From Entomortierella parvispora E1425 (lineage: Eukaryota > Fungi > Mortierellomycota), in the NCBI GenBank assembly GCA_020891255.1, contig BQFW01000013.1, positions 496,001-560,000 of the forward strand: 64,000 nucleotides of DNA, written 5' to 3'. The notes under the pieces were generated by a model that ran no database searches, was not told the origin of the DNA, and worked only from the letters and a program-made list of their open reading frames with translations. Of the stretch, positions 56,713 through 63,575 are shown one piece after another. A program made the translations under genes and the position numbers. Positions within the stretch are counted from its first letter, which is position 1, and each line of letters begins with the position of its first letter.

Positions 56713-59299
<2,587 letters not shown>

Positions 59300-60343: not shown

Positions 60344-63020
60344 TTACAGAATGGTGCACTTGGACTTCTTCTTGGCGATCTTCTGGGGTGCTCCGCCGTC
60401 GCGTGCCTGTCGGATCATCCGGACAACATTGTAGAACGAGCGCTCGACATTGACACAAGTCTTGGCCGATGTCTCTGTAAAGTCGCAGCCCAAGATCCTC
60501 GACATTTGAAAGCCCTCGTCGCGTGATACTTCACGTTCCTGCAACCGATCGCACTTGTTGCCGACTAACATCAGTGGTACTTGCTCTGAATCCTTGACTC
60601 GTGCAATCTGGTCGCGGAATCGCTTTATCCTCTCAAAAGTGGATCGTGCTGCAATTGAATAGACCAAGAGGAATCCTTCGCCATCCCTAGAGCAGTTTCA
60701 ATGAACAAAGGAAGATAGCCGCCATCAGTAAAACAAAACTCCTCTCCATTGGCGGCTCTCAAACACATATGCACGAGAGCATTGAACAGCTTGTCCACAG
60801 AAAAGAGAGAGAGAGAGAAATGAAAGTAAAAAAAAAAAATTGGACAATGTCTGAGCAGTCAAAGACAGCCTAGAGAGCTACTGGGGCATTCACTGGAAAA
60901 GTACATACCGAATCCATTGATCTCTCAATGCCGTGTATTCCTCCTGTCCGGCAGTATCCAGAACCTCGAGTACACAAGACTGATCATCAATCACGACCTG
61001 CTTTCTGTAAGAGTCTTCAATGGTAGGATCATATGTCTAATCATAAAAGAATATAAAGAGTTTTAGCAACGTGAACGTCTGGGGCATTCATTCAAATAAA
61101 AAAAAAAAAAAAGCCGGCTCTATAACGACGAAGGTCCGAGCCCTGTTTCAAAACCAAACACGCCACTCAAAGGAGTATGAACGAAAAAAAGCTCTCATGC
61201 AGTCCAACTTTTTCGAAATAAAACAACCAGGGAAGCGCCATGCACAAAGCTGTTCCGTTCGTCTTGTTTTCAAATGCAATTAGAGAGTGTTTGATGGAAT
61301 AGGAGGAAAGACCGAGTCGTAAACAAGAACGAGACCAAAAAACAACAAGAGCAAAACGCGATATGGGCGACCGTATGCATCGAACAAGTTAAATAAATGA
61401 TGCCTCATGGCTGCCATGCCCGCATTCCTGCCGCTCATCCGTGCTCTGTTTGATCCCCATCAGTCTGCTCCTGGCACGTTGCAAATCAGCCCTGTTGGGC
61501 GACCCATGCGTTGTTTGATTTCCACGAGCCTTACCTCTGTTTGATGCGGAAAAGAGCGTTGCATGCAGAGCGGGTCGACAGAGAAAACAAACAAAAAAAT
61601 AAGCGCAATCGATACCGAATCGGGTTTGAATTGAAGGGTGGAAGAAATACGTTAGCTACATGGTCCTGTTCAATGCCATTGCTACTATCCCATGCATTGT
61701 CGGTCGGTCAACTTACCAACAAAGTGGTTTAAGCACAACTGTTGTGGGGCAAAGTTGAATGGGTGTTGATGTTCAAGAAGAGGAAAGAAGACAAAAAAGG
61801 TCAGTAAGAAACGCAAAGCAAATGTGTTGTGGCTTTTTTTGTCTTTTTCCTTCTCTGTTGCTTTTGCTGGAAAACAACAACAGCGGAAAACTCGGTGTCC
61901 ATGCTCCATGCATCCGAATGCTCGGTGTTCAGGCAAAACTAAAGAGAGTTTTGCTCCGCCTCTGCAAGTTACACCAGTGATTATCTATCCTGCGTCTAAC
62001 AGAGAACTGTAGAGAGTTTCCACTTGCCTGGATTGTGAGTGCAGTCTATCATGGGACCATGAAAGCAAAAAGAAGGGAAAAAAAGCAAAAGGTAGAAGGT
62101 TAGAAGGTGGAATTGCCCAGGATGCAGAGATGGCGCAGGTGGTTGCGCCGCTGCCCAGGGGTTGGCTCGAGACAAGGACCTGCAGGGGCGGGCAATGTGG
62201 TTTTTTTGTCCTTTTTTTTTTCTTTTTTGTATGTTTGTTCTGTTTTTCTTTCAAGCAGGGAGAGGTTCCTCTCTCCCAAGGGACAAAACAAGCACATGCC
62301 ACCCATCTCCCCGTATGCAAAGTGATAAGATGTCCAAAAAAAAGAAGAGATCGGGCGGACCGCGGTCCGAGAAAGCAGGTTTGGTGGCAACTGAGACAAG
62401 AGATCCGGTTTTTGAAGAGGGCAAAATAGGTCAAGGATGATCAAGGGGGGGCTGACATGGAGGGAGGGAGAGAGAGAAGGAGAAGAAGAAGGAGAGGGGA
62501 AAGGGAAGGGAGAGAGGGAGGTCGTCGGGTGGGAAGGCAGCATCGCATGCTTTGTTCGCAAGGGAGAAGGACGAGGAGGGGGGGTGGGGGAAGAAGAACA
62601 AGGTCCAGTGGACTGCACGGTGCTGCAGTGCACCCGTACGCCTACACACGCCTACACACGCCTACACTCGCCATGTCACCATGGATAAACTCATCCTTCC
62701 TATCCTTCTTCTCCTGCGAGACTGTAGGAAGGCACAGAGAGGGACAGACGACAACATACCTTGCCAACACCTCCATCCTATGGATGAGGAGACAGAAAGA
62801 AAGAAAAGAGAGTTAGTGGCTGGACGAGATGCATGCGTTTCAGAACGAGATGGAACAAAGTGTCATCTCTTTGGGTGGCAGGGCAGGGGGGTTGGGTGAC
62901 AAGGACAGAGCGAGAGTGAAAGAGGGGAGCGACCGTCAACGGTCAATGGTCAACGGTCAACGGTCGAGAGGGAGACCAAGGTCGACTTACTCCAAGAACG
63001 ACCAGCTTGTAGAGCATCAT
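60344..63020 (-). CDS. RAS2: Ras small GTPase, fungal Ras2-type, with CAAX (CTIL); seven exons including micro-exons
   Basis: Exons 63020-62991 ([10 protein letters not shown]), 62777-62760 (DGGVGK), 62045-62028 (TALTIQ), 61738-61717 (LCLNHFV+G), 61536-61535 (AG), 61036-60909 ([18 protein letters not shown]) and 60686-60344 (NKCD, ETSAK, CTIL). Confidence 0.95.

Positions 63021-63149: not shown

Positions 63150-63234
<85 letters not shown>
63150..63234. repeat. (GA)n microsatellite upstream of the Ras start
   Basis: About 85 bp of near-perfect AG dinucleotides with one interruption. Confidence 0.95.
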
Positions 63235-63237
<3 letters not shown>

Positions 63238-63575
63238 TGGAGCGAGAAGAAGAAGACGAGATGACAGATGGAGTTGAATGAGAAGAGAAGGAGAAGGAAA
63301 GAAAGAAAGAGAGAGAAGGAAAGAAGGAAGGAAGAAGAAAGCAAAGGGAAGAAAGGCAAAAAAAGGGGGCCCAGAGCACAATTCAGTTTCCTCTTGTACC
63401 TTTGCACGGTCGTGAATGGGTAGGTGTCAAGGTGCTGCACTTTCATTCATTCATTCATTGTACCTTTGCTCTAGTGCGTATCCCTCTCATTGCTTCTTGT
63501 CTTGTCTTCTCTGGCTCTTCCTGCTCGGCTTCGCTTGCTGTGTTGGCCCTCTGTCCGTCCGTCCGTTCGTCCGTT

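Follow-up and report, generated by a model that had tools for sequence, protein, structure and literature searches.

How does a gene keep its reading frame when the exons on either side of a gap cannot be joined to each other? This question is raised by a Ras2-type GTPase gene of the Mortierellaceae fungus Entomortierella parvispora E1425, which lies on the minus strand of a 64,000-nucleotide (nt) stretch of contig BQFW01000013.1 (positions 496,001 to 560,000; this whole stretch is referred to here as the window, and coordinates are those of the window). Exons 4 and 6 of this gene are 680 nt apart, and joining them directly gives GAC ATA TGA, that is, NHFVDI and a stop after two codons, a frameshift that the original prediction for this locus had described correctly. 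Within the 680 nt, the minus strand reads caaacag-AG-gtaagg (here and below, hyphens mark splice borders), which places the letters AG at 61536-61535, directly between a canonical acceptor (cag) and a canonical donor (gtaagg); there is no other AG-AR-GT site in the interval. Joined to the last G of exon 4, these two letters, which are needed for the frame, form GAG, the codon for Glu30 in NHFVETYDPT. The AG at 61536-61535 is very probably a genuine, constitutively used 2-nt exon of the Ras2-type gene, because the frame needs both letters, because the spliced RNA of relatives has them, and because the surrounding YAG-AR-GT is conserved.

The immediate surroundings of the micro-exon are as follows. 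Exon 4 (61717..61738, 22 nt) reads TTGTGCTTAAACCACTTTGTTG, followed by the donor gtaagt; it encodes LCLNHFV and the first letter, G, of codon 30, and thus ends in phase 1. Intron 4 (61537..61716, 180 nt) is a GT-AG intron with CTAAC at 61655-61651 and the acceptor cag at 61539-61537. Exon 5, the micro-exon (61535..61536), supplies the second and third letters of the codon for Glu30, a residue at the start of switch I. Intron 5 (61037..61534, 498 nt), also GT-AG, has the donor gtaagg at 61534-61529 and the acceptor ttag at 61040-61037. Exon 6 (60909..61036, 128 nt) starts with ACATATGATCCT at 61036 in phase 0, and the acceptor ag occupies 61038-61037; the coordinates originally given for the gene stand, except that they had exon 6 begin at 61037. 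The 117 nt upstream of the micro-exon acceptor contain no AG, and this tract begins at the CTAAC, its sole branch-like motif. When the 680-nt interval was shuffled with dinucleotide frequencies preserved (n=2000), 14% of the shuffled sequences had some AG-AR-GT, and none (0) had one with an equally long AG-free tract. An AG-AR-GT site behind a long AG-free tract is therefore beyond what chance produces. At the protein level, Val29 and Glu30 are invariant across 12 full-length fungal Ras2 proteins (alignment A1).

RNA-type evidence comes from relatives. An RNA-only run search with 3.1 kb of the locus found no RNA run of this strain, and a search of runs of any kind with 841 nt found DNA runs for the strain, along with runs from a relative. 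Three of these runs (X4, X5, and X6) are from one sample with the same species label and represent a relative that is ~93% identical in exons. The X4 and X5 contigs keep the introns; the X6 contig (record 12, 1647 nt, depth 259) has all six covered introns cleanly removed. Read in the mRNA sense, the X6 contig consists of exon 1, exon 2, exon 3, the 22-letter exon 4 (found between the joint from 61038 to 62028, with two synonymous changes), and then 131 letters aligned to 61038-60908. Of these 131 letters, the first two are AG, the next 128 are exon 6, and the last is the G with which exon 7 begins. The mRNA of this relative has exactly two additional letters, AG, between ..TTTGTCG and ACATATGAT, and the aligner set them onto the acceptor at 61038-61037. 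The second, independent spliced sequence is a Joint Genome Institute (JGI) contig, L005, which is 1093 nt long, intronless, and contains a 186-amino-acid open reading frame whose protein is 93.5% identical to ours; it reads CACTTCGTTGAGACATATGAT. We regard L005 as a transcript, because the genomic genes of its family span 2.2-3.4 kb with six introns. The X6 contig and L005 share the joint ..TT(T/C)GT(C/T)G-AG-ACATATGAT, and the micro-exon is present in the mature mRNA of both relatives. The expectation that AG restores a Glu next to switch I was borne out by the 186-amino-acid Ras2 model and by these contigs, which read GTNG-AG-ACATATGAT. For this strain, the micro-exon model predicts ..CACTTTGTTG-AG-ACATATGAT.. 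as the main mRNA joint.

The X4 and X5 DNA contigs of the ~93% relative also allow introns to be compared with the window. Most intron sequence cannot be aligned; the islands that still align within introns 4 and 5 are 61127-61191, 61270-61334, and 61511-61634, and the last of these holds the micro-exon.

Orthologous loci were reached through annotated proteins, and in each of them we scanned the interval from ..CAYTTYGTNG to ACNTAYGAYCC. A single YAG-AG-GT site with an AG-free tract of 74-170 nt upstream was found in L001, L002/L003, L004, L006, L008, L009, L011, L012, and L013. Among the Mortierellaceae, the site is present in Lobosporangium, Linnemannia elongata (two assemblies), Podila minutissima, Actinomortierella wolfii, and Gryganskiella; outside this family, it is present in Geosiphon pyriformis, Umbelopsis vinacea, Phycomyces blakesleeanus, and the basidiomycete Violaceomyces palustris. 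Gigaspora margarita (L010) has tag-AA-gttagt. The site drifts in position and lies between 124 and 459 nt from the start of the interval. When it is aligned together with ~30 nt on either side (A2), A.AG-AR-GT alone is invariant, and the remaining intron sequence is unalignable. The pattern occurred in no more than 0.3% of shuffles (2000 shuffles) in 11 of the 12 named loci. The conserved YAG-AR-GT that the original prediction proposed to look for in orthologous Ras2 loci is thus there in every complete locus examined.

A further 12 genomic contigs came from a scan of metagenomes; they belong to a second family of the Ras2 type, which protein search places in the Agaricomycetes (Schizophyllum 'ras protein'/Ras1p, Armillaria 'related to small G-protein Ras2'). 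In all 12 Agaricomycete-type contigs, a 2-nt exon (AG in 10, AA in 2) lies 49-76 nt upstream of the TYDPT exon. Overall, AA instead of AG is found in three genomic loci (L010, L058, and L065). Transcript-like contigs of the Agaricomycete-type family have either GAG (L022, L027, and L050) or GAA (L020 and L021) at the corresponding codon. The natural AA loci and the GAA transcripts agree with a micro-exon, yet they do not come from the same species, and a search of the metagenome loci for one species with both an AA micro-exon gene and a GAA transcript found none. Taken together, 11 named and 12 metagenome loci carry the flanked letters, which is conservation beyond chance, and direct evidence for the micro-exon spans five subphyla. 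Because YAG-AR-GT is conserved among Mortierellomycotina, Glomeromycotina, Mucoromycotina, Ustilaginomycotina, and Agaricomycete-type groups, the exon is probably older than their split, as judged from these genomic sequences.

In other contigs (L016-L035 and others), LCLNHFVETYDPT is uninterrupted, and the intron just before LCL is retained. Since LCLNHFVETYDPT is contiguous while the pre-LCL intron stays, both introns around the micro-exon were lost together in some lineages, which are probably the Dikarya RasB/Ras2 genes. Joint loss of both introns is what intron loss mediated by reverse transcription predicts, and joint loss of flanking introns has been reported for plant 1-nt exons (PMC8831610). 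Another Ras2-like group (L036-L042, L046, L048, and L074) reads ..LTLQHFVET-YDPT and has a single intron one codon downstream (GAR ACN-gtaag...yag-TAY) and no micro-exon; this layout could result from intron sliding or from an independent gain nearby.

Exons of this size were expected to be missed by most gene callers, and annotated orthologues are indeed scrambled at this joint. Among the 81 NCBI Ras2-type models in our first match list, 25 are correct (..HFVE-TYDPT). The faulty ones drop Val-Glu (6 models), skip one or two P-loop exons (14), insert intron-derived junk (10), have a replaced or truncated N terminus (9), or lack the TYDPT region (17). The HF-TYDPT form is annotated in Podila, Piptocephalis, Gigaspora, Violaceomyces, Martensiomyces, and eight Agaricomycete models. 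A different error is seen in Umbelopsis (P0037), where ..ASLSTTE-TYDPT results from reading intron 4 through ..ccacaacag-AG and then using the micro-exon's donor, as checked against the genomic locus L011. A similar form is found in Spizellomyces (P0034, ..FISTE-TYDPT) and in Agaricomycete models with ..IE, ..VE, or ..TE before TYDPT. Faulty joints at exactly this position occur in the models of dozens of species. Combined with models of Piptocephalis, Martensiomyces, Basidiobolus, and Rhizophlyctis that read HF-TYDPT or skip exons, the P0034-type form suggests, from proteins only, that the micro-exon may also be present in chytrids and Zoopagomycota.

Several points weigh against a constitutive 2-nt exon. 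The RNA support consists of assembled contigs from relatives, neither reads nor sequences from this strain, and where the micro-exon is AG, cDNA by itself does not show whether the two letters derive from it or from the ag at the end of the next intron. Nor are long AG-free tracts confined to the 2-nt exon: they are also found in front of the 18- and 22-nt exons and of some normal exons. The Dissophora locus (L007) is uninformative: the scan of its interval gave no good micro-exon candidate, and a 25-N gap lies at the expected site, at the end of a 114-nt AG-free tract. Finally, we infer constitutive inclusion rather than regulated skipping, and the same is true of the splicing order and of branch-point use.

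The alternative that survives best, which was raised in the original prediction, accepts the 2-nt exon as real and makes it a regulated switch as well: conditional skipping, or a stall between splicing steps, would produce a frameshift sensitive to nonsense-mediated decay and thereby tune Ras2 dosage. Skipping does put a stop two codons later, alternative use of plant 1-nt exons has been reported (PMC8831610), and the exon has persisted over a very long period even though both introns can go together, as the contiguous LCLNHFVETYDPT genes of other fungi show. However, long retention is equally expected of a neutral, 'frozen' layout, because loss of one intron alone needs an exact deletion, and lineages without these introns have an otherwise identical protein. 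The contigs contain no skipped or half-spliced form, although contigs drop rare forms. We consider this role unlikely. An evolutionary version of the same idea, in which the exon dates from an early fungal ancestor and has been kept since because two-step splicing, dependent on a distant branch point and an AG-free tract, serves as a checkpoint, with skipping or stalling leading to nonsense-mediated decay and setting Ras2 dosage, seems to us just as doubtful.

A second alternative dispenses with the micro-exon: a single 678-nt intron would run from the gtaagt donor to a non-canonical end, ..gatt-AG ACATAT, and the AG of the mRNA would be 61038-61037. This is where the read aligner put the two letters, and since canonical acceptors end in ag, the resulting mRNA would be identical wherever the micro-exon is AG. 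Such an intron, however, would have TT as its last two letters in this gene and TT, AT, CT, AA, or CC in the orthologues, an ending that no spliceosomal class of introns has. Nor would it account for YAG-AR-GTAAG behind a long AG-free tract in every complete locus, where the rest of the intron is unalignable, or for the AA that replaces AG in the genomic loci L010, L058, and L065. A shifted acceptor cannot yield the GAA of the Agaricomycete-type transcript-like contigs L020 and L021, and gene predictors independently picked the micro-exon's donor in several species. On these grounds, the single-intron explanation is very improbable. Least credible are an mRNA that uses the upstream TTT-gttggt donor and lacks Val29-Glu30 (CACTTT joined to ACATATGAT, an HF-TYDPT join that stays in frame and is annotated in several database models), a frameshifted pseudogene, or an assembly error, as gttggt is a poor donor, Val-Glu is present in the spliced contigs of two relatives, where HF-TYDPT is not the main product, both residues are invariant in the 12 proteins of alignment A1, all other exons are intact and conserved, and the exon-intron layout recurs in 12 or more independent assemblies, which excludes an indel artefact; none of the cases that the original prediction had named against itself was seen.

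How could a 2-nt exon be spliced? If AG is indeed an exon, the two introns would be removed stepwise by intron definition, because 3' and 5' splice sites that are 2 nt apart cannot both be occupied. Either order of removal would be chemically possible, because both the acceptor cag and exon 4 end in G, so that the donor context is GAG-GTAAGG in either case. Intron 4 would probably use a distant branch point and then the first AG after the long AG-free pyrimidine tract. The distance between the acceptor and the sole branch-like motif upstream of it is 115 nt in the window and 55-115 nt in most relatives. A branch point at such a distance would hold U2 well apart from U1 on the micro-exon's donor. 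The AG-free tracts are U/C-rich and unstructured: the fold z score is near 0 or positive in 9 of 10 loci (from -0.3 to +1.4 in 8 of 10) and +1.2 in the window. We also considered that RNA structure might shorten the distance between branch point and AG and rejected this possibility, since the tracts are unstructured, with Geosiphon (z = -3.2) as the sole exception.

We likewise rejected the AG-free tract as a feature specific to 2-nt exons: the medians are 95 nt vs ~63 nt, without clean separation. It may be a property of tiny exons generally, or of this gene. The tracts before the 18-nt exon 3 are very long in four Mortierellaceae genera (279-380 nt in L001-L004 and L008; 103 nt in the window), possibly another layout with a distant branch point.

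The whole gene model has seven exons of 30, 18, 18, 22, 2, 128, and 343 nt (561 nt in total), all on the minus strand, and predicts a complete protein of 186 amino acids with the P-loop, DTAGQ, NKCD, SAK, and CAAX motifs. Exon 1 (62991..63020, the 30-nt coding part) starts with ATG ATG CTC and is followed by the donor gtaagt; the spliced X6 contig spans 62990-63023 here. Exon 2 (62760..62777, 18 nt) encodes DGGVGK of the P-loop, has the borders catag- and -gtatgt, and corresponds to the letters between the X6 joint from 62047 to 62990. Exon 3 (62028..62045, 18 nt; X6 contig piece 62028-62047) encodes TALTIQ and is followed by a GC donor, gcaagt. Intron 3 (61739-62027, 289 nt) is accordingly a GC-AG intron with the donor CAG-gcaagt. 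Exon 6, matched by the X6 piece 60908-61038, encodes switch I and switch II (DTAGQEEY...DQWIR; Pfam Ras E = 2.5e-11). Intron 6 (60687-60908, 222 nt) is skipped in the X6 joint from 60685 to 60908, and exon 7 (60344..60686, 343 nt including the stop) encodes DGEGF...NKCD...SAK...KKKSKCTIL, which ends in the CAAX box (Pfam Ras E = 1.9e-24).

The predicted protein belongs to the Ras family (Pfam PF00071): it has the G1-G5 motifs (GxxxxGKT, T35 in YDPTIED, DTAGQ, NKCD, and SAK) and a C-terminal CTIL. Its orthology to Ras2 is indicated by the LCLNHFVETYDPT signature, the best matches, and synteny. The full protein is 93.5% identical to P0003, 91% to Ras2 of Lobosporangium transversale, and 78% to Ras2 of Ustilago (Mycosarcoma) maydis; the best named matches of exon 7 are Mortierellaceae proteins annotated as 'Ras GTPase ras2' or 'small G-protein Ras2' (81-87%), in agreement with the family of E. 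parvispora. An enolase gene at 57887-59296 on the plus strand is convergent to Ras2; Lobosporangium, Linnemannia, Podila, and Dissophora also have this neighbour.

Other features of the locus are not tied to the micro-exon. The P-loop region is a chain of tiny exons (30, 18, 18, and 22 nt; span 62028-63020) with introns of 213, 714, and 289 nt between them. In every Mucoromycota locus that was examined, the 18-nt TALTIQ exon stands alone; in Violaceomyces, it and the preceding exon are fused. The GC donor of intron 3 is common to Lobosporangium, Linnemannia, and Dissophora, and the donor is GT in Podila, Actinomortierella, Gryganskiella, and all non-Mortierellaceae loci. Upstream of the ATG, at 63150-63245 on the minus strand, there is a long (CT)n microsatellite with CT-rich tracts, presumably part of the 5' untranslated region or promoter. 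An Rfam scan of the long introns for hidden RNA genes found nothing above threshold.

Is such an exon without precedent? Recursive splice sites of long animal introns are zero-length exons with the sequence YAG-GTAAGT. Like the site described here, they have a 3' splice site that abuts a strong 5' splice site, and their removal is necessarily stepwise (PMC6224609). Unlike them, the Ras2 micro-exon leaves two coding letters in the mRNA, which separates it from recursive splice sites, and its introns are short by animal standards. It is not part of a stwintron either, because both introns have complete signals of their own, with the two retained letters between them.

Closer counterparts are known among ultra-short exons. 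The CYP621A P450 genes of Fusarium have a 1-nt exon (Nelson and Syed 2026, PMC12940212) that resembles the Ras2 exon in several ways: it is ultra-short, lies in a conserved motif with AG and GT on either side, is needed to maintain the frame, and is missing from nearly all gene models. It is constitutive, and the evidence for it came from orthologue comparison, as used here too, and from Sequence Read Archive reads. The two cases differ in exon size (2 nt here), in the gene (a Ras2 GTPase), in distribution (several fungal subphyla vs one genus), and in the long introns of the Ras2 gene (180 and 498 nt). Throughout the land plants, the genes APC11 and VPS55 contain conserved 1-nt exons that annotations widely get wrong (Guo and Liu 2015, PMC4674806; Yu et al. 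2022, PMC8831610). Deep conservation, pervasive misannotation, and loss of both flanking introns in some lineages are common to the plant exons and the Ras2 exon. The plant exons were proved by minigene mutation of the exon letter, whereas the Ras2 exon rests on sequence and contigs; kingdom, gene, and exon size differ as well.

In the fungal kingdom, a long-read annotation of Coprinopsis cinerea includes 13 one-nt, 57 two-nt (in 50 genes), and 27 three-nt exons (Cell Genomics 2025, PMC12230235), and exons of at most 3 nt occur in 89 of its gene models, 63 of which get a premature stop if the exon is left out (PMC12230235). The 2-nt exons of Coprinopsis are of the same size class as the Ras2 exon and come from the same kingdom; that report gives counts only, without gene-level description, cross-phylum conservation, or Ras. 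The Agaricomycete Ras2-type gene described above may well be among the Coprinopsis genes with 2-nt exons. Our literature search found no paper on a 2-nt exon in a Ras gene or on its conservation across fungal phyla. Ultra-short exons are thus an established kind, and the AG exon of Ras2 is a new, unusually ancient, and often misannotated example of it.

Ras2 is a core signalling gene of fungal morphogenesis and virulence, which gives the wrong models of this gene practical weight. They can be repaired by a simple rule: a YAG-AR-GT should be sought between ..HFV+G and TYDPT. Beyond annotation, the Ras2 micro-exon is a naturally replicated exon near the lower size limit, with several fungal subphyla, AG and AA variants, and lineages with joint intron loss available for comparison. 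This makes it a useful system for studying how spliceosomes that work by intron definition treat splice sites that abut, and whether this requires a distant branch point.

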